From: Botryllus schlosseri
Taxonomy: Eukaryota
NCBI GenBank assembly: GCA_051294905.1
Contig: CM119386.1
Coordinates: 9,114,001 to 9,178,000, forward strand
Length of the DNA stretch: 64,000 nucleotides
Reading direction: 5' to 3'
Below the pieces are notes generated by a model. It did not search any database. It was not told the origin of the DNA and was given only the letters and a program-made list of their open reading frames with translations. Positions within the stretch are counted from its first letter, which is position 1. The number at the start of each line of letters is the position of its first letter. Below are positions 8,376-63,737 of the stretch, piece by piece. Both the position numbers and the translations under genes were made by a program.

Positions 8376-8839
8376 ATGGCGTCGTCCGCATCTTCACCGT
8401 CGCACAAACCCGAAAAATCGATACCAAGCGAGGGCACGGCGTTCCTATTGCGGCGCAGCCGCCAAAGCAGGAAGTCCCCATTGTCTTCCCCGGCTATCTC
8501 AAGAAAATCAAACCCTGGGCTTGGCACTGTGGTCGAGACCACGGAAGCGGATCAAAGCAACGGATTGCGCCGCCCTAGGACTATAGCCCGACCGCGATCG
8601 CCCAGTCCCAGCCACGAACACCAACGGATACCGGCGCCAGCCTTTTCGCCGATGACAATGCGAAGGTTGGAGAGCAAGCATCTGGCCGCGAAGATACGGC
8701 AGTCTTCCAACGCGGGCTTCGGATCTCCGGAAGGACGGAGTCCGGTTTCGTCTCCGGTCGGGTCTCCGTCTATGATGAGAAGGATTATCGTGGGGAGAGG
8801 CGGCGTGCAACGTAGAAGGTTCACACTGGCGAAAATGAA
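8376..8839 (+). CDS. PDE4: PDE4 alternative first coding exon A (long isoform, PDE4D5/PDE4B3-like N-terminus)
   Basis: ATG 8376 plus 154 codons + 2 nt, ending ATG AA|gtaagt (phase 2, in frame with 41991 giving ...RRRFTLAKMN-FDENG). The end SPVSSPVGSPSMMRRIIVGRGGVQRRRFTLA aligns ungapped with recalled PDE4B3 SPRSSPRNSPCFFRKLLVNKSIRQRRRFTVA. Confidence 0.87.
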
Positions 8840-9345: not shown

Positions 9346-10284
9346 GCCGTTAGTAGTGGTTGGAATCATGTTGAAATTATACGTGATAAAATACCTGCCC
9401 GCAAATGCCTGAGAGAGAACAGGGTGACATCGATAGACCTTACATGGTAAAGTAACTGCTGAACCACACACACATCGCCTATTAACTATATATATTTGGT
9501 TATTGAGGTGCGGGTATAGAGTTATATTTGTACCATATGCATGCGTATAGCCATACATTATTCATCCATCGTGCAATAAAGGGCTATGTATAGTAGTAAC
9601 CCATAGCAACAGTGAAATATATGTTCATTTCGAATCTAATTTAAGGTTCGGATTTCGGATGAGTAAGGAGAACCCTGCTCGGTATATCGGATCGATTAGA
9701 TGTCACGAGTTTTGATATAGTCCGACATACGGGGTTGTCGCGGTATACCCTACTATTATCATGGCACCGAACGCCGTGGCATGAAATGGGAATTTAAGAC
9801 TAAAAGGCCAGTTGCTTACGGTTCAGTACATGCACCAAATGATGATGGATATTGCTTTGGAGCGTTGGAATCAATTCCAGTCCAAGAAATGTGATACGAA
9901 GTGTGATAAGAATAGAGTGCAACACCGGGATATGTTTTGACCTCTGTTCCTACGGCCTATCACAAAAATTGATTTATCGAACGTTCACATCTTAAAAGCA
10001 GGATTATTGCTTCTGTTACTGGACGCTTGACGTCAGAATGTGTACGGTATTCATGGATGAGTGCGTTTCGCTTCAATTAGGGATGAGATTAACGGGAAGA
10101 TTGGATTTGCGGTCGGGCCGATATGTGTAGTGGCAGTTTCCCCTGACTAAATGACATTGAATCGCGTAGTCGAATTTCGCGGCTACTGCAAAATTGATAA
10201 CGATTGGAGTAGCGGGTCTGGTCCGATGAATTTTCTGGTGTCCCTAGCCGACTTTTATCAATGTATTTCAACGACATTTCTACT

Positions 10285-12049: not shown

Positions 12050-12757
12050 TTGGTGTGGTAACTGTCACGCTTAGATTGAAGATTTTGGTTGTGAGGAATT
12101 CATCCATTAATTGTCAACTGAAATCCATTGATATTCTAGATCTGGGATGATCTGCTCCCATCAGTTGTGTTGCTGTTAGTGTTAGTCTGTTGGCTTAGGT
12201 ATTGTACCATAAATATTCGAGACCTTCTCTTCTTTCGAATTCAGTGATCCAGGACCGTACGCTTTTCGATATGAAAACTTCATTTTACCCAATGTACCAT
12301 TATAAATGTGGCATGAATTGATATTGCACAGAACAAAAGTATAAGTAGCCACACTAACGCGCATATCTAAGAAGCATGATCTGTTTTATTTACACTCAAT
12401 TTGCTCCTGCCCCAACATCATTATTTCTATTTATTCTGGATTGGATACGCAGAGCAGAAGTAGCAGGCTCGATTCACACTGCTGTCTCAATAACCCTACT
12501 AGCTAGTGATTCCAGTGCCGGTCCCGGACACAGTTGCGGTAGGAAGGACATCTGGTGTAAAATGCACAACCTCACCGAATTCATGATGCGGATCACTGAG
12601 ACTTGATTAACAGTGGCCACTGCGAAAGTCGACAATGCACAATGCACATAATATCCCAATACATGGTTTTGCTGACGAAGACGTTCTACCCATACCAGAT
12701 GACGTCATTTGCTACTATAGTAATCCTATAATCCGGTACAGTGGTACCCATGCCATG

Positions 12758-13017: not shown

Positions 13018-14470
13018 ACGTTCTACCCATACGAGATGACGTCATTTGCTACTATAGTAATCCTATAATCCGGTACAGTGGTACCCATGCCATGCAGCTG
13101 ATATCTATGTTGCTGTGACGTTTTTTCACATTTAAGCCTCCCGCATAAGCCTTCTTCACGATCGCTGAGAAGATGGAATACGTGAATGGAAAATAGTATA
13201 TATCTCATACACAAATGTGGTGCGGTTGTATATGTCATCATCACATTGAACTCATGAATGCTGACCTCACATGTGAAAGTCTTATACAATGCGCACCACG
13301 TAGTACCCTGCAGTAGCTCAGCCCGTTCCTAACATTCTAGCAATACACACAAATGTACGGCGGTACGCGCGCGTGTTTTGATAAGAAGTGGACAGTGGAC
13401 ACCTGTTCTCTGCTGAATAGATGCAATCAATAAAGACAACGAAATTTCGTATCAGCTCGTACTCACGGCAGCGATCAAATGACCGACATTTGTTGGAGAC
13501 GGCCCATTCCTTCGTAGGTTATATCTCAACTATTTCAAGGCGTGATAGACAAGCCTGTCGGGAAGTTTAATTACGAATATTCATGTGCAGTGCATCTAAC
13601 CTACTCTCCGTATAATAAATAATTCAGCACTGAGTAGCGTCAGACGTAATTTTCGTAAAGGTACGTACTGTACGTTGTACAGTACATGTTGTACGCGTAC
13701 GACCTTGTACCTTGGCGCACCCCGCATATAGGTCGTTTGATGCAGATTTGCTCTTTGATTTCATATCATGAAGGATAGGACAGGGCGATAAATTTGCGAC
13801 TCCTGGTGTGAGTGGAGTTTCGCGAAATGGTTCTTGTATTGCTTGGTATACGGTGCAATCGTGTGTTTTTATTTGCGGGTCTCAAACTAACTGATTCTTG
13901 AATCTCCATCTTAATTATTGCGCTAATATCATATTCAACCCGCGTTCCTGTGTCTATTGACGAGTGAATGGACGTGAAATTATAAATATTTGACTTCGTC
14001 AATTCCCTGGCGCCGTGCGATGCCTTTTTGCAAATCGAGTGAAGTGGTGGCGGACGGTTTTCAAGTACGCAGGCGGCTTGGAACGGAACAGGCGGCCATA
14101 CGCGGCTTACTTGTGTCAACTTTCCGCTTGGAGATAGGTAGTGCGTGTTCTTAATAGTGTAATATTAGTCCGAACGAGCGATCCCACCGCTAAAGTGTTC
14201 TTGACGCGAGAGATATCATCGATACCATTGAAATTTCGAGCGTATTGATAAGAACATAGCCGCGAGCTGTGAGAGTATAGCTGGATACAGGAGACGCGCG
14301 CAGGAAAGTGTGCCAGTTGTCGGGATGCGAGGCGTGGGAAGGTAGGGACTCCGCGTCCGTAAATGCCTTTGGGATTGTATGCGTGTATCTGTAGCGTCCG
14401 CGATCGACTTAATTATCAATGTTTATCTGCGTCATCGAAGATAGACGGGAAGCTTTGGTTTGCTAATACT

Positions 14471-14923
14471 TAGGGCTGGGCAAAATCGAGTACCTGAGTT
14501 GATTGGATTCAGAATGGAGTATTGGGTATCACTCAGTATGACGTCATAACAATATGAATGATGCGGAAAGTTCAAATATGTACCTTTTATGAAACAATCA
14601 GAAAAGCATGCCAGTTCTGTATCACATTAAAGATAACTTGGTATTTTTTCGACCCTATCTCTCATTGTGCTTTGTGCCAGTTGCTGCGGGCTGGCCACGA
14701 CTTCACAGATGTGCCATTTCCGCTGACGTACGAGTCTTTTTACTGGATGTTGTGTGTGCTGCGCTGGGACTAATCGAGGTTTCAATGCCTCCACGATGGA
14801 AAATAGTATAGATACTATAGTTCTCGCTCATAATATAACTCTTATTGGCAAGGAGCGTATAATTTCAGTTCTTGAAAACATGATCTCTTTCGAGTGAGTA
14901 CTCGAAGCATTGTAACCAGCCTA
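14471..14923 (+). mobile_element. hAT MITE family 1, diverged copy
   Basis: Starts TAGGGCTGGGCAAAATCGAGTACCTGAGT, collinear with the 23334 copy, degenerate right end. Confidence 0.8.
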
Positions 14924-20070: not shown

Positions 20071-20558
20071 ATGGACGCGGCGAATTGTATCGGGAAGGTC
20101 TTGAAAGGCTCTGCTATGACAATACCACACACCCTGCCGATCGTGCCGATCATACATTGCAACGACGGCCCGCTCGTGGAGAGAAAGGAACGCAGTAGTG
20201 ATGCTAAGTTGGAGGAATATACTGAAAGGCGTCAGTTTTACAAGTTTCAATCGTTGTCCTGTGGGGAAATGAAGGGTACCTCTGCGAGCACCGATACATA
20301 TGACTGTGACACCAATAATAACACCTCAGCCGAGAAGGCTACCAACTCCACTGCACCTTGGCGGCGTCGGGACGTACACGATCGTTATCACGCACTCTCG
20401 GAAGACTCCGATAGCGACGTGGAGACTTCCAAAGGGCGCACACTGCTAGTGCTGCCTAAATTGTCAATCGGGAGACGGCGGACTTATGGCCAGCAAGCTT
20501 TAAGAGAATGGCAAGATGATGCCAAGCAGAATCAGTACCGTAGACACTCATGGATTTG
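20071..20558 (+). CDS. PDE4: PDE4 alternative first coding exon B (long isoform, PDE4D3/PDE4B4-like RRHSWIC end)
   Basis: ATG 20071 plus 162 codons + 2 nt, ending TCA TGG ATT TG|gtaagc. Splicing to 41991 gives YRRHSWIC-FDENG, versus recalled PDE4D3 PFRRHSWIC-FDVDNG. Confidence 0.87.
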
Positions 20559-21027: not shown

Positions 21028-23333
21028 GTCTAGTTGGAATGGTAAATCGAGAGAGGTAAATATTGTTACAAACAAACCATCGCGCGGGGTTATTGTGACA
21101 TTGTAATAACTGTTTACGACGCAGTACAGGCAGTAGGGATATACGTTTCAAACTTTGCGCTCTGTGATAATTCCATTTCAAAAAGGCTAAAAGGTTATGA
21201 TGCTGCATTACGGTACGGCCACATGACTTGCCTAAATGCGGTGATTTGGGACGATTTTCACGCATTTTTCATGAAGGCTGATTAAAACCTGATTTACAAA
21301 TCACCAGCTTGAAATGCGTATATTGTCACTTGTTGTGTTGGATTTTGTACATTGGTAGGATCTACATCTATATGTATAGGCTATATACAGTCTCAGACAG
21401 ACCCGATAGCGAGTACATATGGATGACCGCAGATGTGGCCAGGGTAAATTTTGTAAAGGTATATTTCGAAATTCGTTAGGATGGGGCGAATATTTTAAGC
21501 AATAACACAACGTCATCGATCCGTTGTGACGCAAATGACAAAGTCGAAAACTTTGTACGGAGCAGGGGGCGATATGTGTGGCAAGACTGGCAACTGTCAT
21601 ATAGGACTTGTTGCGGAGATGTAGGCCTGTTATGGGCACCATAATCATATCTATATTTAGAGGATTGAATAAGTTGTTGTTAATCAACGATTTTTGGCGA
21701 TGAAATATTTGCCGGATTAATGACTAGCGCATTGGACCCCGGCGGCCGCGGAGCGTAGAATTGGCGGAACCGGTCTAGAACTTTTGTGACTGCAGAAATT
21801 ATCTGGTTGCTGAAGCTCTGTCGTACGCGAGGATCAATGATATTTTTACCATTGGTTTCGTATTCTCTTCCCCCTCTTTATGGATTTCGTTAGGTCGCGC
21901 ACGAATCGGTTCAATACGGAAAATCACTTCTATGTTGTCATCACAAATCGGTTTTCTCTCGGGAGCCGAGATGGGTTTAGTTCGAAAAAGCGTTGGTGAG
22001 AGCCATGTCATAATCTCGCCCGACCTTTCGTATCATATGATTACGTCGGTGAGGGTATTGGAGGAGACCGTTTGCAACTGCCTTTGTATTGCTGAGTCCG
22101 GTAATATAATGCAAGGTCCCGAGGGGCTGGATTGTTGCTTGACTTCAGAGAGAATGGGAACTTGGTACAAAAACTGGTGCCGTGTACGGTTAGGAACCCA
22201 AATTGCTTGTAGGTCAGCGGTTGTAGTTGTTTGATAGAGTGTCTTGGAGTTGACAGTGCGTTTTTGTTTGGAGGGTAATACGCCATTGTGACCGTCAGAA
22301 AGTAATGAAACTCGTAGTTAAAACATGTGAAGTGAGTGTTGTCCCGCACCATGCAGATGTGGTGGTAGCGCCCAGAAGTAAATAATATTTCCCCGAAATT
22401 GGAATAGTTTGAAACTCATCGGGCAATTCGAATTGTGTAGTGCACATATATTAAATATTGTTTATTTTTAGTCCAAGGCCTATAAATTTTCTATGCTTGA
22501 TAAACCCTATGTAGTTAGTTGTTGTTGAAGATATTGGATGATTAACAATTATACTTGGGAACCTTGACCACGATAAATGCCTCGTTATTACCTAGCCGGG
22601 TTTTGGGGCTGAGATATGGTGTTTTTGTGAGCGCAAGCGCTACGTCAAGATATATATAACACGCAGTTTACGACGGGTAGCATGCCCGTCTTTTTGAGAG
22701 CATGCTTATGAGGAAAGATGTTGTGGTGGCATTGTGGGATTTCGTTTTATGTTGTGGTGGTATTGTGGCATAGGCGCCGAACCTGGGCATGCAAGGCATG
22801 CCAGGCATACCTAGACATTTTTTTAGGTATGCGGCATGCCTAGAATTCGGTTTGGAATGAATCGGCATAAACCCCGATTGTGTTATTTAGAATGAATCGC
22901 AATGTATTTCCGTTTACGACATTACCTGCTACCGCTTATGTGAGCGAGGTAACCCGTTGCGCGCGGCCAATTAGCTACAAGCGCGTTGCCAATTAACGAG
23001 ATTTGTCTGTGCGCAATGTAACGCGACGCGATCTCCCGCTGAGATGATCGCGAAATTGTGTCATTGATTGCCGTGCGCTCGGCAATCATCGCTTGGGACG
23101 CTTGCCTGCTTTATCGCGTCTCCGACAAGCCTAGTTTCACTCGCTTGAGCATGATTAACAATCACATCAGCAGTAGGCCCGGTGCCATCGCTGCCTGCAC
23201 TATCGCATCTGCATTGGTGCACACGATATTATTGCTTGCCTACACAATCGCATCTGCAATAGGCCTGGTACGAAAGATATCATCGCTGGCCAGTGGCCAA
23301 CTATCGCGTCTAGAGCAGAGCATGTGTTGGCTC

Positions 23334-23850
23334 TAGGGCTGGGCAAAATCGAGTACCTGAGTGATTCGATTCTGAATCACGTAAAATGCTTCGAGTCGAG
23401 TCGAGTATTCGAGTATCACTCATTATGACGTCACAAAATAATGTAATATGTCAAAGTTCAAATATGTACATTTTATGCCACCAACGAAGAACATAATGCC
23501 TGTAACCCGTCACATTAATGATAATTCGGTTTTTTTTTCGACCATACCGACTTCATTGCACTTCTTGACAATGTTGTGGAACGATCATTACTTCCGAAAT
23601 GTGTTATTTTCAGTAACGTTCGTAGCTTTCTACTATGTCTATTATGCTGCGACAGGGCCAATCAAGGTTTTAAGGCTTCCTCAGTGGAAAATAGTATCAA
23701 AACTATAATTGTCGTTTGTAAATTAACTTTCAGTTGCGAGGAGCGTATAATTTCAGTACTCGAAAAAATCGTCATTTACTACTCGACTCGAATCATTAAA
23801 ATTAATACTCGATTCAGATTCGAGTACTCGAATCATTGTGCCCAGCCCTA
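23334..23850 (+). mobile_element. hAT MITE family 1 (517 bp), full length
   Basis: TIR TAGGGCTGGGCA at both ends; perfect TSD GTTGGCTC. Confidence 0.93.
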
Positions 23851-23980
23851 GTTGGCTCCCATCTCTCGAGCCTAGCATGCGTTAGCTCCAATCTTTCGAT
23901 GGCTTGGTGACAATGCCGTTAGGTGTTTGTTATTAGCGATTGTAATTAAAGAGCGACATCGCTGAACTGAATGACATCGA

Positions 23981-24406: not shown

Positions 24407-24430
24407 TGACGTCATTCCTTTGTGACGTCA
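24407..24430. promoter_or_regulatory. Paired perfect CRE sites (TGACGTCA at 24407 and 24423)
   Basis: Two palindromes 16 bp apart, outside any recognised repeat, about 40 bp upstream of a candidate mini exon. Confidence 0.5.
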
Positions 24431-24470
24431 TCGAACTCGCATGCCTAAGGAAAATTAGCGTTCGGCGCCT

Positions 24471-24514
24471 ATGTATTGTGGTATTTCGTTTTCGTATGGA
24501 TTTACATGTCAATG
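24471..24514 (+). CDS. Weak candidate mini first exon (MYCGISFSYGFTCQC)
   Basis: ATG, 14 codons + TG|gtatgt (phase 2; gives ...C-FDENG like several vertebrate isoforms), directly downstream of the CRE pair. Confidence 0.27.
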
Positions 24515-25774: not shown

Positions 25775-26070
25775 CTGGGCGCAATGATTCGACTAATTGA
25801 TGTGGATACTGAATCGAGTATAAATTCTAATGATGCGATTCGGGTAGTGAGAGACGATATTTTTCTAGTACTGAAATTTTACGGTCACTACGAATTATGT
25901 ATTAACGTAATGGTCCGATACCATTTTCCATTGTGGAAGCCTTGAAACCTTGTTTGGTCGTTTATCAGCAGACGAAAAATGTGGTACAAAGCTAGGCACG
26001 TCACATGAAAGTACGGTAACATATCCGTGAAGTCGTGATTGACCCACAGCATTGTCAGAAAGCGCAATGA
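25775..26070 (-). mobile_element. hAT MITE family 1, old partial copy
   Basis: Collinear with 365-660 (gctgggcgcaatgattcga...gccttgaaaccttg...attgtca). Confidence 0.65.
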
Positions 26071-27638
26071 GATAGGCGAGTCGAAATATCTTTATTGCCG
26101 ATGTGGAACCCGCACGTTATTTTTTGTGGTCGCGTGAAATAGTATTTAACCAGCCCTAATGATAAAGTCGCTACAGTTATTACGTAAATTATTTGCAGCA
26201 TTTACGGGAACGTTGAGATGCATGAGTGTGGTAATGGCTGATTGTGCGTGAAAGTATTTGGTAACGCGGTGTCTTAATATCAACATCACTCAAAATAACG
26301 GAAGTGTCTGCAGGATAACATGATCTTTGATCACAGATATGTCGACATGACTAAGTGGGGAAATGCCCAAATAATGTTGTTAATAGGGGTGCAATTGGTT
26401 GAGTTGTTGAACCCGAATAGACATAAATTTACTGTGCCCAATGGGGACGTCGTTGATATGTGGCAGATGCGTGATATATTTATTCACAAATTCACCCCTC
26501 AACTGCAGCTAAGCACAAGTATGGAACTATGAGTATAGTTTGATGTTCGAGTAAAATCATATTGGTCCGCACCCATCGCGTTTTTCTAGTTTTATGCCCG
26601 CATGAAACCCTCATTATGGCGTTGATGCATTCCTTCCTATTCCTCTGTGAAGTGTAAATACCATTTGCAGTCTTAATGCACGTATGATCAATTTTATGAT
26701 TCCCCGCTGTATTGCCATACCGGTCGCTAAAATACAGAGTCTCGGATCTGTTGACGAAAAACGTCGCCACGCTAATGCCGAACTGTATAAGTCCGATAGG
26801 GATTGTACTCTGCTATGGCCGTCGACCGTATTTCATCACGTTTGCGCTACTGGGATATCACAGGCTAAAGTTGTTTGCATTTTTTTATTGCTGAACTGTC
26901 GTCATACGGTATTCCATCATACGGTTTACTGTTCGAGTGAAAAGTTTGGCCGTCGTATTGCGACATCACCGTGTATTTCCCATCCGGATTATGATCATTT
27001 CAATACCCAATTCAATCTAAATTCTTCGATTCCAACAATAATTATCGGATCGGATGATTTCGAACCAGGATAAACTATGAAAATTCGGATAGCTTCGATA
27101 TCACATAGTTACCTGATCCTCGTTGGTGGCGTGGCAGTTGTTAAGATGGATACTTTTCCTGAATGCTGCTTTTCGCTATTCTACTGAAGTAGATTTGGTT
27201 TACTTTGCAAAGCATTTAGAAACATAAGTCATCACTCATCACATCCTAACAGTTCGTCCCGGTACATACGACATGAAGTGGCCACGGAAATGACCATGAA
27301 ATCATAGTCGTTTCCACCCATCAACTGTTGATTTGGATATTAGGTAATCATATGTATTCTCTACTCTCTACTCTGGGGCATTAACGTCAATCTCAGTCAA
27401 TACTACATTGTGAGTTCATGAAACCAACATTGCGATTGCTTGTTTTCGTGATACGATTGCTGCCGAATTTCAAATTTTAATTGCCTTGTAAATTCGACCA
27501 GTCCATGACGCATTTGCCGCTCCCATGTGACGGTTTGCATCTTCAATCCCTATAGGACGGCGAAATAAATCAACTCCAATATGCCAGATACCGGTCGTTG
27601 ACTTGTCACTATTTCTGGGCATTTGATTTTCGTCGCAT

Positions 27639-41990: not shown

Positions 41991-42176
41991 CTTTGACGAA
42001 AACGGCATCGGCCGCAACGCAGTCGACGCGCAGTCGTCGCCCGGGTCCGTGATCCTGAATCCCGCGCCGTCCGCGCATCACGGGAACAGACGCGAATCGT
42101 TCCTGTACCGCACGGACGCGGATTTCGACCAATCATCACCTCTCGCTTCGAGGGCCTCCTCCATATACAGCGACCA
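41991..42176 (+). CDS. PDE4: PDE4 common long-form exon 1 (start of UCR1, PKA site RRESF)
   Basis: Acceptor ttatttcag|C TTT GAC GAA; donor GAC CA|gtaagt. Encodes FDENGIGRNAVDAQSSPGSVILNPAPSAHHGNRRESFLYRTDADFDQSSPLASRASSIYSD. Confidence 0.97.
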
Positions 42177-49841: not shown

Positions 49842-52220
49842 CGGCCATCTCAATTGAAATTGGAAGCCTTGCGCCTGAGAGATAGCGAGGCGTAATTCCG
49901 ATATCGCCGAATTTGGATCATCCTTCAAAATTTAGCAAATACCCCATGGTTTGAAGTGGCTGACCAGTGACCAGTTCGGGGAAATTATTATAACGTTTTA
50001 TATTCGCGAAAGAAATTACTGATACTGGCGATTCGCCGTCATCACCGAGCACATCGTGCGATGCGACGCACGTGATTCTGGGTATTCCTATGCTGGCTTA
50101 ATATCTACCGCATGCGATAGTTCAGTTTCGAAAATTTCGGTCCAATTCCGACTAAAATGACGCGAGTTGACCAATCTATGTTCGACTGGCGGCGGGATTT
50201 AACAGGACTCCCGTATTTACCAGAGTGAATCCAAGTGTTACTGGTGTGCGTGAAAAGTAGGATTGATGATTTCGCGCCGTGACGTAATTCTGTAACGTAG
50301 GACAGTCGTATCCGTGTAAGTCACCTTATGGTATCTCAGCAACTTGGGACAGTCTGTACACTGTGGGATTTATTGTTCAATATTCGTACACCATGAATTG
50401 TGTTCACCGTTACTGTCCTGTACGCACTGTAGCGGGGTGTTACATACGCTTATGTATACTATATATAATAGTGACAATGTCGTTTATCACGTTCGCGTTC
50501 GTACTTTAGTTGAGGTTGATGATGTTTTTCGTAATCGCAGTCTTTCTTTTATCGCAGAAGCAATATTGTGTTATGTTTTTCGTTACGCCGGCTATGTCAT
50601 CTTTTACAATGAACTAGGCGACCCGCGACGTAGTTATTGTTTTGATCTCGCGGGAACAACGGACATAAAACGCCGCAAATTTATCTCGCCCATAAAGCCG
50701 CGCATGCGCATAACGTCCCGAGTCCGAAAGGTTGTGTATACCCCGCCCACGTGACAAGTCCCTATTTATCAGTTTCACAATCGTGTAAGCATACACTGCT
50801 TATGTGATGTGTCGTTAAACCCATATGCCAGAATTGACATTTCCTGGTCGAAAACACGCCGTGGCCGAACACGATAAGGCTCCCCGCTGTGCGATCGTTG
50901 TGACGTGCATTTTGAATCTCTGAGCGAGGCTTCTCGGCTGCAAATAGTGTGCCATTTCCATATCGGGAAAATACGGTAGAGATTGCCCGTATGTTTGTTG
51001 ATCGGATTAGGTTAAAAGTGTCTGGTCTTGAGTCGAAAATTGCCGTGCTCCGCATAATATAAGTGAGATAAGTGTGTGGTCTAATGTATCGTGAAAATAT
51101 AAACGCTCTTGTTATTATTTACAATCCTTATCCTACCCATGCGGCAATCATCTTGTCTACGTTTTGGTGGGTGGTGCGTCTTGAAATCGGACAGAGGTCA
51201 TACATAGCGTCTGTTGTAAGCGATTATGACTTCACGCGATAAGAAAATCTTCGCAGCGAATCGGCTCTTTGAGATTTCACGTGTTCTCCGATATTGGCCG
51301 AGAAAAGCGTAGGCTCTACGCTCTACCAGCCTTGGTAATTGATTTGGTTGACTTGCCACGCGCTGAATCGAGATCTTCAAAAGCTAAAAACTTTCCGAAA
51401 GGCTATTGGAATCGCTGCGCAAGTGCGCATATATTTACCGAGAAGGAATGTATCTATGCAGAATATGTATGGCCCCTCTCGATTTTACTAGACAGCTGAG
51501 ACTTGTCTGTTACTTTGAATGCATCATTAAATCGTGGAAATAGCACCACCACCATCAAGTCCCTCTCATTGGATTGAAACTGTGTTGAACAATACCGTAG
51601 CATTCTTGCTTATATCATGTATCCGTGTAGCTGTATACTGTATGAGTGTACGTGCAGTCGTGCACACGTAGTACAGTAAAGGTAAAGTCATAGTCTACCG
51701 CGGTCACCTCTGACTAGACTCGGACATGTAGTTGAATCATACGCCATTGACTAAGTGCTAGAGTTACTCGCTACCACGCCGAACCTACCTTGTCACGGGA
51801 CAACAAATATGACTTAGCGTTGTGTGTTTACTTATTGTGTATATTGAGATTAACTCACTTGGAAACCCGCTGCGCTGTCTATGTAGTGTGTAAATTATGG
51901 TGTGTATACAGTATCATACAGTCTATTAGCGCATCGCTTTGTTTCCGAGCGTTCGCTGAGATTCCATTGTACTTTTATACGTTGAATTTGACAAAAATCT
52001 CTATTTCGATACCTTTTATTGATTAACCTGGTAGCACAAAGAGACCGGTATAACCACTTATCCTGGCCCTACCCCATCCTTTTTACAATTCACTTGGCTC
52101 TTACTCGCCAGTTCTATATCTTCTTAATTGTAGTTCCTTTTGAATGAGTCCAGTGTGTGCTCACACCATACGTGAATACATCAAAGCGACTTGATTCGTA
52201 AGTTGTTTTTCTCTTTTCAG

Positions 52221-52260
52221 TCACGGCGGCGAAGATCTTATCGTCACGCCTTACGCTCAG
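52221..52260 (+). CDS. PDE4: PDE4 UCR1 micro-exon (40 nt, HGGEDLIVTPYAQ)
   Basis: ctcttttcag|T CAC GGC ... GCT CAG|gtaagc, phase 2 to 0. Matches vertebrate HGDDLIVTPFAQ. Confidence 0.95.
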
Positions 52261-54810
52261 GTAAGCAGTGGGTTCATTTGGATATTTTACTCTATTTTGG
52301 CGTATTTGCATTTGTCAACTATATATGCATATCGAGCTGAAAAATTGAGTCGGCGGGTTGTAAACTTTACTGTCCAATATACTGATACAGAACAATGAGT
52401 GCGTTTAAACTGTGGAATATGTAAATGAAATTGGAGGCTTTATAATACTCTGTCATGACTTGGTGTTGTGGCGTGCGAAAATTACCTGGCAAGGCCATCC
52501 TCGCTATCTGCGACGTCACTCGATTTCGTCGTGCAATTCTGCGCCATAATGATGCAGTGAGTTTAGTCACCCTTCGTAGGAACGGATGAAATTTGGAACG
52601 GCGTGACCGTGTGCTAATGTCTTCGTTGGTCAGTGGTCACCCTATGCGCGAGCGCTTAAAGCAGGGTATGGGTGCGTCACTCCTGCAGGGTTGTGTAGTG
52701 CGGGTATGTCAGTCATATGACCCGTGATGCAATGCTGAATAAAGAACAATATGCTGGTGTTAATCCAGTACATTTCTCTCAAAAGTCTAGTTTTGCAGTG
52801 AGAAATAGTCCCAAGTAATTAACCTAATTTAGGATAACACATGTGGAATATTGTCCAATTGTCCATATGACATATAACCGCCCGACAGGCAGGCACATAT
52901 ACACTGCATTCCACGAAGACCAAAAAGTGCTCACTCTAGTGCAGGGTTTCCAAGGCTATATGTCCAAATTCTATCCATCAAATATGGCAGGTGACAGTTG
53001 CGGTAAATCTAATTCATTCACACCTCCCATGAGTTGGCTCAATGCGGCGGTTCCATAACGTCTTTTTGCCGCGACCAAAAATCCTATCCGTGGAGACTCA
53101 CCTGGTGATGTAATAATAATGAACCAAATTCGAAGCGTGAGCTTCGTGACCGTTTACAGCTAGCTCCCGTGCATTCCTCACTACGCGTACGCAAAGGGGG
53201 TAGAGAAACATGGCAACTTATATGGTCGTGACCTTGGTTTTAGCGTTTATAACTGTGTTCAATCCGCCAATGACTATTGTTTTACCAATTCGAAGTTCAA
53301 ACTACGCGGTGTTGGTTCGAGTTAGGGTATCCAAGATACATATGCGAGTTCGCGAAAACTTGGCACAATTCGCGACCCTTCTTTCGTTAGACCGCGGTGG
53401 CTCAGTCTTCTTGGCGTTACGTCACCGCGATTGATTTTATGAACTCGCCAATGACTCGTATATCTGCGCAATATGCCCAACTGCGTGCAGCCCAGTAACC
53501 GGGTTAGCAGCTGATCAGAAATATTTGAGTCGAAAGTGCCGCGGCTATGCTTGAACTTTGCGGATCGTCGCTCACTGCGCGTGCACGGACGATTGTGATG
53601 AATGCGACAGCTTGATAGAGTTCTAGGCATTAGAAGCGTTACTTATCTCCGGCATGTTTACTGAGTGTCATAAGGGAGATTCTCGTAATTCGTTACTTAT
53701 TCTGGACGCGATATCTGATACCCTGGCGTCTAAGGCCTGCGGCTAGTTGATGCAGGCTTAGGTGATAGCAATACCGATTTCGGTGCATATATTCTTGTAT
53801 ATGCGGGATACGCAATGCAGAAGCAAACACCTGACGAGGTCTGAAGGTGCGCTTGTCGCATTTATAAATCCGGTTTACGTGACGTCACTGCTTGGCCAGT
53901 GCAATATTGAGCAATTCCTATTATATTTTTGGATGTCACGCATGACTTGCACTACGAAACCTTTACGCCTGTATTCGGTGTTCCTTCTGCACCGTGTAGC
54001 GTTGTCGCTGTTGCACTAGCGCGCATCTTAGCTGCTAAATAATGCAAATCTTTATTCGTGGGGATAGGTCTAGTGACAGTGGCTATGCAATAGTGTGGAA
54101 ATGTGCAGGGACGCAGCACTGCCTGGCCATCAAAAGAAGTGGTTAGTAACGGAGTACTCCAGTAAGTTTTGCCTATTTCCACTACTTAGTGACTACTGCT
54201 TTTCATGTCTACTTTTCATTTATTAAGTAAATCTAGACCTGGCATACCTAATTTTTATCTTGTAAATCGTTAGTTTAACTTGTACTTCAGCAGCATCAGA
54301 AATTTTTAACTTACAGACTACAAGAGTACTAACGACGATTAATTTGACCACCTCTGGTCATCAATCGGGAGGTTACAGTCTCGCAGATAATAAAAGAACT
54401 GTTCCAAATGTATTTTCGAACGCAAGCACACTCAGTGTGCTATCGATTCAGTGGCCTTCGTGTAAACTCGCCCCTGGCCCCTGGTCGAGGGTCCTAGGAG
54501 ATCAATATAAGCAGGCCATTACGTTTACCCATAAAATTGGAAAGGAATCACGTGTAGTAAAGTTGTGTCACGTAATGATGTGCCGTGTAAGCACACTCCG
54601 TGAGAAGTGCAATCCCAAACCGATCCAAAACAACAAAAATAGACGCGCTGCTCTAAATACATTCGCGGAACGGAACATAACTAATTGCCGCACGCATGAC
54701 TGAAGATCCGATATCCACCCATTGGGCAGTTGACAGCTTCGCTGGCCGTATCATTCGGCTTCCGTTACTATTGATTTGAACTAATAGAGCAAAAATCTCT
54801 TTTCTCCCAG

Positions 54811-54893
54811 GTACTTGCAAGCTTGCGGCGGATCAGAAACGACTTCATTAACCTCACGAACATTGGTAATTCGATAAACGTCAATAACACGAG
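54811..54893 (+). CDS. PDE4: PDE4 UCR1 final exon (VLASLRRIRNDFINLTNIGNSINVNNT)
   Basis: tttctcccag|GTA CTT GCA ... ACG AG|gtacgg, phase 0 to 2. Matches vertebrate VLASLRxVRNNF. Confidence 0.93.
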
Positions 54894-54988: not shown

Positions 54989-55053
54989 TGTATGAGTTGA
55001 TAATATGGTCCCTGTTGAATGCATCGTCAGTACATCCTAACCTTTGCTTACAG

Positions 55054-55139
55054 GCGCTCCCCTATCTCCACCACGCCGCGAGTAGGCAGTCCGACAGTCT
55101 CCGCAAGCGGGCAGCAATCACCGGGCCATCCGAGTTATG
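55054..55139 (+). CDS. PDE4: PDE4 linker region 1 (LR1) exon (RSPISTTPRVGSPTVSASGQQSPGHPSY)
   Basis: ctttgcttacag|G CGC TCC CCT ... TAT G|gtacgt, phase 2 to 1, bridging its neighbours exactly. Starts RSP like the vertebrate PDE4D LR1 exon. Confidence 0.86.
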
Positions 55140-57593: not shown

Positions 57594-57788
57594 GGGGCGT
57601 GGCCAGAATGAAAAGTGGTTGCGACCGAAATATTTTTTTGAGAAAGAACTGACGTCATAAGGACATTGTTACATGCGGAATTTGAGGACAAGATCGCATT
57701 GTGCGCAAAACGTAGTCTGTGACCTATTACGTCGCGGACTTGGATCTCTCCATTGTCTCGCATTGACGTCAGTTCGTCTGTGACGTCA
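57594..57788 (+). promoter_or_regulatory. Putative intronic short-form PDE4 promoter: GC-box plus three CREs
   Basis: GGGGCGTGGC at 57594-57603; TGACGTCA at 57650, 57764 and 57781. The last CRE ends 85 bp before the UCR2 acceptor. Confidence 0.65.
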
Positions 57789-57873
57789 TCGAATCGGTCA
57801 AGACCGAAAGCTCATTCCGCTGGCGCAACGGGATTTGTGTCGACATTAGGGCAATATTGTTATTTCCTCGCAG

Positions 57874-57989
57874 GCACGGAAGACTTCAAGAAGCAGTCCC
57901 TGGACACCCTGGACGAGTTAGATTGGTGCCTGGACCAGCTGGAGAAAGTTCAAACGCACCGATCGGTCAGCGAAATGGCTTCCAATAAG
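57874..57989 (+). CDS. PDE4: PDE4 UCR2 N-terminal exon
   Basis: atttcctcgcag|GC ACG GAA ... AAT AAG|gtgcgc, phase 1 to 0. Contains [27 protein letters not shown]. Confidence 0.97.
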
Positions 57990-59022
57990 GTGCGCTCGGT
58001 TCATGCTCCGGTATTTGCTACGCGTATTAGATAAGAGGCATTAATGGCCTAATTATAACTTGGGCTAAACGGCGGAGTTATCATTGTTATTATTGGAGGA
58101 CAAAGAATTCCCCGCGGACTATTTCGGCTACGCTAAGTCCTTGTAGGGACTATTGCCGATAATACCGGATGAAAGTTTATTTCAGGGATAAGTGTGGTTG
58201 CAAAGTCGCATGGCAACATGAGAAAATATTCGACTGAACAACGTTCCGCGCGAATTTGAAAATTCAAATGAGATTTATCTGTATATTGCCGCGTTTCGAT
58301 ATCTCTGCATGGCATATCGAGATATGCGTTCCAGGTAAATTATACTTCGGATAAGCAACGCGAGTATTCCTGCATCAAACGATAGACGCGCAGATACGAC
58401 GAGATGGGCCGCGATAACTCGCCGAGTGCTATTCCACGTACGCGGGACTTGAAATATTTATATTCAGCACATGCGCGTGACGTGATGACATGTGGAAATA
58501 TAGGGCGTCGAAGACGTAAACACGATCAACGTAAACACGAAAAACGCAAGCTTAACTAATCGCGAATCAAATCGAAAGGTTTTGGCAGAATACGCAGAAA
58601 TCGTAAGATCCCCTTACTCTGAAGTGTAAATGATTTGTCAAGATAGACATCTCAACGCCGGTGTACCACACCTATACTGAAAGTGGTGAATTCGGCAAAA
58701 ATACTGCTTTCCCATCATCGCTATGAGTGTAGTTCCAATAGTAGCGTGTGGACATCGCAGAACAAAAGAACCTACAACAATCCTGACCTCGATGTTTCGT
58801 ATTTCGGCATTGTCCGCTACCAGGTGGTCTTGCCCGATGTTTTGCAAACGCGGTGTCGTTTATGGCGCGGCGGTTTAATGCGTTGTTTTCTTACGCGGAC
58901 TTTTGCGACTTGTTTGTATTTTCGCCGCATTCCGTCTTTACCACAGAATTCCTTAGTTTTGCAAGATCTCGGGTTTTGCGTTGACGTTTTGACACCGGGA
59001 ATGGTTGATCAAGATCATTAGC

Positions 59023-59255
59023 GGGGCTGTGCAATATCGAGTACCTGAGTGATTCGATTCGAAATCAAGTATTGAGCTTCGTGTCGGATAGCGTATTGCG
59101 CTCGTCGTCACGTCATAGCAGTATGAATAAGGTGGAAAGTGATGTACCTTCCATGCGACCTCCAAAGAAAATGAGTCAGTTCTACACCACATTAAAGATA
59201 ATTGGGTATATTTTCGACCATACCTATTTCATTGCAATTTGTGGCAATGCTGTTG
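59023..59255 (+). mobile_element. hAT MITE family 1, diverged partial copy
   Basis: ggggctgtgcaatatcgagtacctgagtgattcgattc... collinear with the 23334 copy for about 230 bp. Confidence 0.7.
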
Positions 59256-61131
59256 ATTGATCATCACTGCATAAGGCGTATATTTACTCGGAAAAATATA
59301 CTCTAAAATAATTTAGAGTCTAAATACTCAAGTTGCATTATTACGGTTTATAGATACTAGACTAGCCCTATTAGTTATATGCGGAAAAGCGGAATTTTCT
59401 GCTGTTCATAGATCGAAAATAGATTGAAATTGACGAAATACGCCCGCTCTGACGGAGATCGTATGGCTAGTTCGTTCTGAATTATTCATCTTGGCTATTT
59501 CCAGTTGTTTTCTTGTCAGCTGTATAATCGAATTTCAATCGCTTGGCGATCATGTTGTGACGTAACAATGACACTGCTATTTCAGATAACGTCTCGCTCA
59601 CTATCGCCCCAAATAATATTTTCGCTTTTCATCTGAATGAGTGTAGATAAGAGTAAATGTATATCGTTTGCCGCGATTCTGAAAATTGAGGTATTGTGAA
59701 TTCGTTGGCAATAGTCTAGCGGTTGACCGCGAGAGGTCAGCAGAATCGTTGATTGGCGGGACATTTCATCATAGTATCATTTGCGAAAGTTTGTTACGAA
59801 CTCCCCTTTGTCACTTCAACGCGTCCGTGCGCTGAGCAATTCTTGCCGCGCAGAACAGTCGCTTGTTTGTGCTGGACAATCGTGGCGTGAGTTGTTGCAA
59901 AATATGCGCGGCGATTTGTTGTGGCACCCCCGGGTGTCCCGATGGCCTGTGAATGGCCGCTTCTGGCATCGGGCATGAGGGATTATATAATTTTTCTCTC
60001 CATGCTGTGAGCACACAAGGACACTTGTAACGTTTACTATTGAACTAGCATGCGAGCAACACTGTCACACGGCTACAAGTTCAGGAGCCGAAAGAAATAA
60101 TATCGACCCGTGTAAAATGAACACTGTTATCGAAACACTAAAACGACAATACCAGTCAACGAAAGGTCGGCACTATAGGGAAAGAGAAACGTTCAGCAGG
60201 TCACAAACGTTACGCTTAACGCCGGTACATTTCGGTGGATGATCCATCAGCACAAAAAGGAATTCGACGCTACTGTTTCGTTTGAATCCTGTGCTAAATT
60301 CCAACGAAATATACAACAATCCGGACTGCAGCTCCAATACGGAATACAAGAATCCGAACTACAGTTCAACGTCAGGTTGCAGAAAAATTCTGAAAAGTTC
60401 TTCTTCCGCGAAGTTGTCTTTCTCCCGCATGTGATTGGCTGGTGACTCGGTGTGACGCCTACCACTTCCTTGTTACGTTGTCATACTTGAACGTTCTCTG
60501 CGAAGAGGAAATTGACTGCAAAGTTGGTATGTGCTGCATTGCCGCACACTCTCAGGCGATATGGCTTCGCAGTCAAGTCGAGACCGTGTAGATAGATGCT
60601 CCGTCACCTTACACTGAATAAGGTATATACAGCGCTTTCATTATCTTTCCAATGGGTGAAAATGAGTCAAATGCACCATTTCTTGTGGAGATATCCTGGA
60701 AGGTGTAGTGTGTTCTATGTTGGTGTACCACCCAAAACTCCCAGAAGGTAGTACACGTTAACATAAGCCGCTACACCCCTGGGACATGTCTCTATAAGCA
60801 TTGGTGTTTTTCACTCTCATTTTTACCCGTGAAAGCACAATTTCGTGCATGAAAGGGTTGTATGCTTGATTTACGTCCCATGCTATGGTGGAAATCTGAA
60901 AAATACGTATTTTGTACCCATGGATTTTCAGTGTATTCTGCCATTCATGCTTTAGAAATTTGTATCTTATGTTAGGTTGACCTATCATTTTTGCCGTGTT
61001 GTTATCAATGAATGCTGGGATGACCAATGGATAAATCCTATATCTATAATAAGCAAACGAGCTGGACTGTCGCGTGATACCATCCGAATGTTCGTGACCA
61101 CAACTGCTAAATGACAAAGTAGCCCAACTTT

Positions 61132-61495
61132 GATCACGTGACGTGGCTTGAATGCGTGGTGTGTTGACGCCGATCGTAGGCGTGTCTGGGTATCTTCTTA
61201 CCAGGGCGAAATAGGGTGTAGCATCCCGGGCTGTGACGTCAAATGACTCGAGGATTGATGTGATTTTGGAATCGTTACATCGTCTGTCGTTATATCTCTC
61301 GGACGTTATTTGCCGACGTTCTCGTTATTGTCTGTTAAGTAAATTTGCACACTCGCGTAACTACCCAGTTTACGACGGCCAAGAACAAGTTAATCGCCCT
61401 TGCGAAGTTTCGTGTCACTAGTCGCGCTAGATTTTGCGGGATCTTTTGTCACCTGAGTCAACCTGCGCGCGAGTTAATCCCGGTCGGTGACGTCA
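61132..61495 (+). promoter_or_regulatory. Putative super-short-form promoter/enhancer (bZIP/bHLH site cluster)
   Basis: CACGTG 61135 overlapping TGACGTGG 61139, CRE at 61234, AP-1 TGAGTCA at 61454, CRE at 61488, in a CpG-rich stretch. Confidence 0.45.
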
Positions 61496-61569
61496 ATCGG
61501 ACGCGGCCCAACGAGAAATTACACCCGTAACGAGCTGGGACAGGGTGTGACTGTGTTTGCGTTTGGTGC

Positions 61570-61659
61570 ATGGAGTTGCCCGTTTTATGTCAAAACGACT
61601 GCCAGCGGCTGTGTTTGCGTTGCGTCCCGTGGCGTAATTATACTGCCGCTGTCGCGGAG
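61570..61659 (+). CDS. Candidate super-short-isoform first exon (MELPVLCQNDCQRLCLRCVPWRNYTAAVAE)
   Basis: ATG plus exactly 30 codons ending GAG|gtattg (phase 0, as needed to join the downstream FKRML exon). ATG lies 75 bp after a CRE. The donor hexamer is the same as exon C's. Confidence 0.33.
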
Positions 61660-63737
61660 GTATTGCCGTATCTGTCTTGGAACCAGAGGTGGTCACGAAG
61701 CCAAGTTCTTCAACTTTGCCTACTTTCAACACTAACTCGGCTATTATGTGATGGTCACTTCCACTTCTGCGTAAAAAGTGCGTTTTACTATTTGAATTTT
61801 GAAAGAAATGGGGTAGATTTTACTTTACTTTAGATTTGTTGTCATTCTTTTTGGAGTGAAATTTGTCATACAAACCGTGCGGAATAGCCCCCGTATCACG
61901 TTAACTAAACATATATTTGAAGTTTGCGTCTATTTGTATTGTCAGTAGTCGTTTTGCATCAGTCATGGATATCCATCTTGCAATCTCAGAAATAGGCTCC
62001 TCGACCGAATCTTCTATTTAAGACTTCTTGTGAGTACTGAGTAAGTGTCAGACCGTTGGCTATCTACTTCCGCTGGCAATAGTTTTCATGTCTTGGAATC
62101 GCTACTTCTGCCTTCGATTGAGTAGGAATTTACGGCGATGCTTGAAATTGTTACGTGTCTTTGGCCTTCCGTGGTTGAGTGGATTTCTTACTCGACATGA
62201 AGTCACGTGATGTGCTTTCTTGATGAATCGGATTGTGGTGATGACTTGTTGTAAATTGGGATTCGCAAGCGGTCGTCTGTTCAAAAGTCTAGCTAGACGA
62301 CGGTAGACTACACTCATTCGTCCTCTGTGCGATCAGCTGTCGTGCGGCTGAAGTCCGATTTTGGCTTTTTGTGCCCGCAAGCTATTGCATCGCGACGGTG
62401 AGAAATGACTCGATTCCGTACATGTTGTATCACGCGCTTGTCTTTATACTAGTCGTGTTGATTTGCTTTCGACAATCCTATATCGAACCCTTGCGGTATT
62501 AGACTCCTTGCCGGAAAACACTCGTAGTAATCGAGAGTCACCGGACTGTACAACTGGCTATGATGCAGCTTTTTGCAATCCACGAAACCAGCCCGAAAAT
62601 ACATGTATTTTATTATCAAGGCGAGATCTGTCACTTTGAATGGAAGCGATCCGCCATTTCTGACGCAAATTCGTGAATATTATATAAATGACACCGGCGT
62701 GCTCGCGGAAATACGATTTCTACCTCCGTAGGTAGCAATTTCCTTTGAAAAGCGCATTATAGAACGTTCCCATTCTCCCCAATCCTGTCTTGCCATTGAT
62801 CTTGGCGTTTTGATGCTAAGTTGGGAGCAACCTTTTCCGCGGCGACCGTGATAGCGATCAAATTGGCGTGAAACAACGAACAAACTCCATGCTATTAAAC
62901 GTTTAATTACCTTTTCTATAACCTACAACAAACACACACGGCGAAACCTTGTGAGAAACGGCCGCACGCTTCCAGTTTTAATGGTCGGTGGCATGTATTC
63001 TGTGTTGACAGGCGCATTCCGCGGACTTTTTGTGATTTTTTTCAACTGGGATTCCGCAATCGTGCGCCTTCCGATTACTACACAGCCTTGGCGTAGAAAT
63101 CCTTCATTGTTATAGTATACGTGTCGGTTTAATGCGCTGTCAAATGCCCCAGAAATACGAACAACTTTGCCCATGTTTGTACATCGTGCTGAGGTTAAAT
63201 TTCTAGATGTGGACTGAGGCGAACGATAAAGAATTTTCATCGTGAAATAAAAGTAACTACAACATACAATTATAGCTTCAAAAGAATAGACGAACTAGCA
63301 GTTTCGTGCCCCGCATGGTATTCGGTAGCGTATGACTCCCGCATGAATTCGAACATACGTAGCTCATAATGATATGGGCTGATACATGTGATGCGTACAA
63401 TAATTATTGGCCTCACAGATCCATACCATATTTCGTTGTTTATACCGTAGAAAAACCGCGCATGGATTTGTCCATGTACCCTTACATTAATCGGAACGTT
63501 AATTATACCGTGTCGCCCACAAATACATTCCTTCGTAAGAGCGATACATCAAAATGTATACGCACATTGAGAAACGTATTTAAACCACAGCAATGGCAAC
63601 TTGTAGGTTTTCCGGTCGTGTTTATATATACAGCATTGGAAGATATGTCTCCGAGTATTTATACATGGACATTATCTACTAGTGTGCATGTCAATTGTCA
63701 ACCTCGCTATATCCGGTTAGCTTCCAGTATCCAGCTT

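Follow-up and report, generated by a model that had tools for sequence, protein, structure and literature searches.

The ICER P2 promoter of the CREM gene is an intronic promoter with closely spaced tandem CREs, whose truncated product damps the cAMP response, but it belongs to another gene and yields a repressor, as opposed to an enzyme at the locus described here. The short forms of mammalian PDE4 constitute the transcriptional arm of cAMP desensitisation and have been regarded as a late acquisition of the vertebrates. Those of PDE4B and PDE4D (PDE4B2, PDE4D1 and PDE4D2) are transcribed from intronic promoters that are inducible by cAMP and CREB (PMC1892053, PMC3730299, bioRxiv 10.64898/2026.08.10.743905). 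In the published scheme of these genes the short 5' exons lie between LR1 and UCR2a and the super-short exons between UCR2a and UCR2b, with PDE4D2 being a 'truncated super-short' form that starts from an internal UCR2 Met (PMC2929239). The PDE4D1/PDE4D2 promoter has been described as a cAMP/CREB-inducible negative feedback element (Vicini & Conti 1997, as relayed in PMC3730299), and PDE4B2 is reportedly CREB-regulated and cAMP-induced (PMC1892053; bioRxiv 10.64898/2026.08.10.743905). PDE4 enzymes devoid of UCR1 also occur outside vertebrates, as in the long, short and supershort isoforms of Aplysia ApPDE4 (PMC4580752), a mollusc system compared here for its UCR1-less isoforms. Among tunicates, Ciona ESTs represent long PDE4 forms only, and the short forms have been argued to have arisen independently in tetrapod genes (PMC2929239).

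We analysed a 64-kb stretch of the Botryllus schlosseri genome (hereafter the window), in which PDE4 exons were placed by tblastn with PDE4 proteins combined with direct reading of the sequence. The resulting features are as follows:

8376-8839: alternative first exon of PDE4
20071-20558: alternative first exon of PDE4
41992-42176: UCR1a exon
about 52219-52263: UCR1b exon
about 54809-54863: UCR1c exon
about 55053-55139, + strand: LR1 exon (RSPISTTPRVGSPTVSASGQQSPGHPSY-G) with a phase-1 donor G/GTACGT, compared with the LR1 of proteins P0002, P0003 and P0146
57860-57873, + strand: acceptor of UCR2a, a polypyrimidine tract followed by AG (ttatttcctcgcag), phase 1
57874-57989, + strand: UCR2a exon with a phase-0 AAG/GT donor (Pfam PF18100, E 6.8e-13; tblastn matches to PDE4 proteins)
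57975-57977, + strand: in-frame ATG of SEMASNK (gaaATGg), the predicted PDE4D2-like start

The ORF around 57874-57989, which yields the match to the Pfam PDE4_UCR family (E 6.8e-13), can be aligned to the beginning of UCR2 in PDE4 proteins of many animals. The exon itself specifies (G) plus 38 residues before the GT donor. The Met of SEMASNK is kept in all PDE4 matches, with A at -3 and with G at +4; since the conserved E-M-A codons dictate this Met as well as its Kozak context, neither can be taken as a separate sign that the codon serves as a start. A search of 58-64 kb did not reveal the next UCR2 exon (FKRMLN...), which is placed beyond the window. When the ORFs of the UCR2a and UCR1a exons served as queries, in word-indexed searches and in an exhaustive one against representatives, no close relative was recovered in the protein collections: all matches were at most 74% identical, with the single exception of a vertebrate-type (probably fish) sequence that is 87% identical over 30 residues.

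The 2.7-kb intron between LR1 and UCR2a, bounded on its 5' side by the LR1 exon, carries in its last ~280 bp a cluster of CREs, which occupies the following positions together with its associated elements:

57594-57604, + strand: GC/GT box GGGGCGTGGCC of the Sp/KLF-type consensus, 46 bp 5' of CRE1 (motif match only)
57650-57657, no strand: CRE1, the perfect palindrome TGACGTCA in the context acTGACGTCAta (read from the sequence)
57764-57771, no strand: CRE2, perfect TGACGTCA (read from the sequence)
57781-57788, no strand: CRE3, perfect TGACGTCA (motif match)
57812-57818, + strand: Initiator-like TCATTCC (YYANWYY, with a CA start dinucleotide), a putative element read from the sequence
57676-57974, + strand: ATG-free leader, part of a 302-nt ATG-free run at 57673-57975

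The three perfect palindromes, with a spacing of 114 and 17 bp, span 139 bp, and 85 bp separate the end of CRE3 from the UCR2a acceptor, whose AG ends at 57873. The preliminary description of this DNA, which had reported a GC box and three perfect CREs in this arrangement ahead of UCR2, is confirmed for each of these elements and distances. It had further named the gaaATGg at 57975 as the first ATG 3' of the CREs, and indeed no ATG is present in any frame in 57676-57974. Gaps of at least 299 nt make up only 5 of the 1282 ATG-to-ATG intervals in the window. The frame of UCR2a is additionally open, again free of ATG, for 50 codons 5' of the acceptor (57723-57873), i.e. across CRE2 and CRE3, with a P of ~0.09 that is not significant. 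Read on the opposite strand, the 12-nt context GAACTGACGTCA of CRE1 equals CRE2 plus GTTC, and these 12-nt CRE arms account for the z of -2.9 obtained for the DNA fold of 57630-57800. A foldback element was considered for this region and rejected, as there is no long palindrome. The possibility that another gene or an RNA owns the cluster was likewise rejected: Pfam searches with ten flanking ORFs recovered PDE4_UCR only, and the Rfam and tRNA scans of the neighbourhood were empty.

The distance from the acceptor to the Met is 101 nt here and 98 nt in the vertebrate contigs, with both acceptors in phase 1. Vertebrate genomic ORFs that encode the N-terminus of PDE4B2 (P0024, P0032) or that of PDE4D1 (P0118) are continuous with UCR2a, after which the downstream intron follows, and the long-form acceptor is recognizable inside these short-form ORFs as TTTGCAG/AA and TTCGCAG/AG. 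The PDE4B2 and PDE4D1 N-termini are thus 5' extensions of UCR2a, which implies that the vertebrate short forms start just 5' of this exon and read through its acceptor. Judged on exon order, phase and spacing, the homology of the LR1/UCR2a intron of Botryllus schlosseri to the vertebrate short-form promoter intron is well supported, and the earlier placement of the CREs at the mammalian short-form promoter position stands: they lie between LR1 and UCR2a, in an intron of the same phase whose acceptor is at a comparable distance from the Met.

A close counterpart is the mammalian PDE4D1/PDE4D2 promoter, which is similarly situated in the intron directly 5' of the first UCR2 exon, whose transcript reads through the long-form acceptor (genomic ORF P0118/L007), and whose PDE4D2 product starts at the same SEMASNK Met as that predicted here. 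PDE4D1 itself differs by its unique N-terminus and by an ATG of its own further upstream, whereas the Botryllus schlosseri locus has no upstream ATG. Sequence similarity between the PDE4D1/PDE4D2 promoter region and this locus is limited to the exon, and the one PDE4D1-type vertebrate contig has neither a full nor a 1-mismatch CRE in 800 bp upstream. The mammalian PDE4B2 promoter occupies the same intron with its own 5'-extension architecture (P0032, L003-L006), but encodes a unique 39-residue N-terminus; in the PDE4B2 contigs, counting from the Met, only a half-site (-441) and a site with 1 mismatch (-500) are present, and there is no perfect CRE within 3.2 kb. As there is no ATG upstream of 57975 in the Botryllus schlosseri leader, a unique N-terminus of the PDE4D1 or PDE4B2 type is excluded and only a start of the PDE4D2 type is left. 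The equivalence of the SEMASNK start to the PDE4D2 Met, and with it the predicted PDE4D2-like product, therefore survives from the preliminary description.

Based on these observations we tentatively propose, as the reading that we favour though with considerable doubt, that the single ascidian PDE4 gene has an internal promoter, responsive to CREB/ATF, whose proximal part comprises the three CREs and the GC box. Such a promoter could plausibly drive a self-limiting cAMP feedback loop, for which we infer the following course. A rise in cAMP would activate PKA, which would phosphorylate a CREB-family bZIP factor bound to the CREs, and transcription would start in or just 3' of the cluster, at approximately 57680-57870. 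The short transcript would then read through the UCR2a acceptor, as in the vertebrate short forms, or alternatively its 5' piece may be replaced by a spliced leader at that acceptor. With or without such trans-splicing the first AUG would be that of the SEMASNK Met at 57975, and the predicted PDE4D2-like product would be devoid of UCR1, which holds the PKA site RRESF (42088), of LR1, and of the 34 residues with which the UCR2a-encoded part begins. The additional PDE4 would lower cAMP and thereby close the negative feedback loop. It is possible that the UCR2a acceptor doubles in this manner as a spliced-leader trans-splice acceptor: outron lengths in Ciona have their peak at about 100 bp (PMC4691747), in agreement with a start site located 50-200 bp 5' of the UCR2a acceptor. 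Start sites in Ciona are mostly CA or TA (PMC4691747), and the TCATTCC at 57812-57818 is one weak candidate among several CA/TA positions in the leader.

The main rival to an internal promoter is that the cluster acts as an intronic CREB/ATF-responsive enhancer of the long-form promoters (e.g. those of the first exons at 8376 and 20071), with no transcript starting locally, which we consider doubtful. The clustering and the half-site density, which argue for functional CREs, would serve an enhancer equally well, and 57789-57873, as read from the sequence, contains neither a TATA box nor any other strong core-promoter element. Single and paired CREs across the other PDE4 introns have the appearance of a locus-wide CRE-responsive landscape, and the restriction of Ciona ESTs to long forms also points in this direction (PMC2929239). 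On the other hand, the cluster, 85 bp away from the acceptor, occupies the site homologous to that of the vertebrate short-form promoter, and the leader without ATG runs right up to an in-frame Met. Consensus CREs, moreover, usually act close to a start site, which counts against an enhancer.

The specificity of these motifs has to be judged against their abundance in the window. In total 16 copies of TGACGTCA were found against 1.2-1.3 expected from the dinucleotide composition, a 12-fold excess that makes it the most over-represented 8-mer palindrome of the window, and a CRE here is consequently less specific than in most genomes. Related bZIP motifs are likewise in excess, with TGACGCAA occurring 7 times (1.4 expected), TTACGTCA 6 times (1.4 expected) and TGACGTCAT 8 times (0.4 expected), and CRE half-sites overall are mildly enriched (183 vs 137). 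Within PDE4 introns perfect CREs are also found at 10028, 15233, 24407/24423, 45678, 53880 and 61234/61488. When sites were placed at random, three fell within 139 bp in 0.7% of trials with all 16 sites and in 0.2% with the 11 non-repeat sites, and no other stretch of the window is as dense in CRE half-sites as the 300 bp of the cluster. The cluster thus clearly exceeds chance against base composition, with the caveat that the palindrome is enriched window-wide, partly via repeats. CpG islands are of no use for finding promoters here, because the CpG observed/expected ratio averages 1.19 in the window and is never depleted. With this ratio the locus also shows no sign of germline methylation.

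This abundance raises the alternative that the cluster has no regulatory role and is a by-product of a TGACGTCA-rich genome, for instance a decayed CRE-carrying MITE or a local duplication, whose proximity to the exon is coincidental. Five of the 16 perfect sites are carried by two repeat families (the other 11 being non-repeat), which are distributed as follows:

600-907, 14440-14721, 23311-23613 and 58991-59289: family A, MITE-like, ~300 bp, beginning with TAGGGCTGGGCAAAATCGAGTACCTGAG
354-433, 23779-23854 and 26017-26140: fragments of family A
12681-12757 and 13018-13094: family B, a 77-bp direct repeat, 99% identical, with a perfect CRE, part of a larger repeated segment in the 9-13 kb interval

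Three of the four full copies of family A contain one perfect CRE, which in the remaining copy is degraded to TCACGTCA, and both families carry the same 8-mer TGACGTCA as the cluster. CRE1 and family A have the flank TGACGTCATAA in common, but BLAST and the profile detect no homology between the cluster and either family. The cluster was compared with these families by BLAST of each CRE ±150 bp against the window, by repeat searches of 56.5-59 kb and 57.3-58.1 kb, and by a profile of the MITE family with CREs, run with nhmmer; none of these yielded a match of the cluster at 57.7 kb to either CRE-bearing family within the window. A transposon- or MITE-borne origin of the CREs accordingly finds no support within the 64-kb window, and neither does membership in a repeat family, which the preliminary description had named as something that would refute its proposal.

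The sole shared sequence is a 30-nt core common to 57764-57793 and a second double-CRE module:

24407-24435, no strand: TGACGTCA, 8-9 nt, then TGACGTCATCGAA, matching 57764-57793 at 27 of 30 positions

This module is situated within the alternative first-exon array of the long forms, and the CRE3 15-mer TGTGACGTCATCGAA recurs identically in it at 24421-24435. The shared core may represent a functional module used at both sites, or else what is left of an old, possibly mobile, element. The likeness ends at 30 nt, with neither flank homology nor terminal inverted repeats nor a target-site duplication, which counts against a cluster without function. Likewise, three intact 8-mers amid otherwise unique sequence suggest maintained sites, and the clustering remains at P < 0.01 even at the inflated density of the window, before its position is counted. 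Taken together with the sheer number of perfect sites in 64 kb, these features leave a cluster without function as unlikely in our view. Were it nevertheless inert, it would be a cautionary case in which perfect CREs are abundant and partly spread by mobile elements, so that motif-based promoter calls need a genome-wide background. A mini-exon candidate of 14 codons (24471-24514, ATG...ATG/GTATGT) is present 3' of the 24.4-kb module and could be due to chance.

The CREs might alternatively be functional sites for other bZIP dimers (ATF2/Jun, ATF1, ATF4-type or PAR/E4BP4-like), which would tie PDE4 to stress, growth-factor or clock signals and not to cAMP. The sequence TGACGTCA binds several bZIP subfamilies, the excess of TGACGCAA and TTACGTCA noted above is in keeping with such dimers, and a C/EBP-like GTGCGCAA, read from the sequence, is present between CRE1 and CRE2. 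However, the full palindrome is the site for which CREB has the highest affinity. In mammals the precedent at this locus involves CREB and cAMP (PMC3730299). We regard control by these other dimers as very improbable.

For the internal promoter, 13 PDE4 loci from other animals were compared, corresponding to nine distinct genes: four of invertebrate type, PDE4B2-type and PDE4D1-type vertebrate genes, one vertebrate-type (probably fish) gene and two NCBI contigs that resemble each other. In the 0.8-6 kb examined, none of the nine has a full CRE upstream of the UCR2a Met, and the comparison revealed no CREs or alignable promoter shared with vertebrates. Furthermore, LR1 and the start of UCR2a form a single exon in at least three invertebrate loci (L001, L002 and L010), implying that the LR1/UCR2a intron, common to vertebrates and Botryllus schlosseri, is not universal among animals. 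The claim that the feedback circuit is conserved in this lineage is therefore unsupported, given zero of nine loci with an upstream CRE and Ciona ESTs of long forms only (PMC2929239). Points that weigh against the promoter itself are these same two results, together with the missing TATA box, the lack of CpG-island contrast and the window-wide excess of CREs.

A working element would be a case of convergence specific to this lineage, or else an ancient promoter in which the sites have been replaced over time. Mammals already provide elements of this kind, to which a tunicate would, if the proposal holds, add a new member; the feedback design would then predate the vertebrate genome duplications or constitute a striking convergence. 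In a more far-reaching version, which we consider quite improbable, a CRE-driven LR1/UCR2a promoter existed in the tunicate-vertebrate ancestor or was reinvented at the same intron, the ascidian generates its UCR1-less enzyme by spliced-leader trans-splicing onto the long-form cis acceptor, and the CRE pair at 61234/61488 may act likewise at the super-short position. If true, an ancestral or reinvented promoter of this kind would overturn the view of short PDE4 forms as tetrapod innovations (PMC2929239).

This pair belongs to a group of elements in the intron after UCR2a:

61135-61146: CACGTGACGTGG element
61234 and 61488: CRE pair
61454-61460: AP-1-like TGAGTCA
61258-61570: ATG-free run of 312 nt
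61570-61659: candidate first exon, with ATG at 61570, a 30-codon ORF (MELPVLCQNDCQRLCLRCVPWRNYTAAVAE) and a phase-0 donor GAG/GTATTG

The phase of the GAG/GTATTG donor equals that of the phase-0 donor of UCR2a, which fits joining to the next exon. From its motifs and reading frame the 61135-61660 region is a candidate for a second internal promoter, with a first exon at the position of the vertebrate super-short 5' exons. Relative to the UCR2a Met the two CREs lie at +3259 and +3513 in the Botryllus schlosseri window. A perfect CRE downstream of this Met is also seen in three of the nine loci from other animals (L002 at +5350, L010/L011 at +2800 and L012/L013 at +1739/+1810), which could be due to chance or might point to a CRE close to the super-short position in several lineages.
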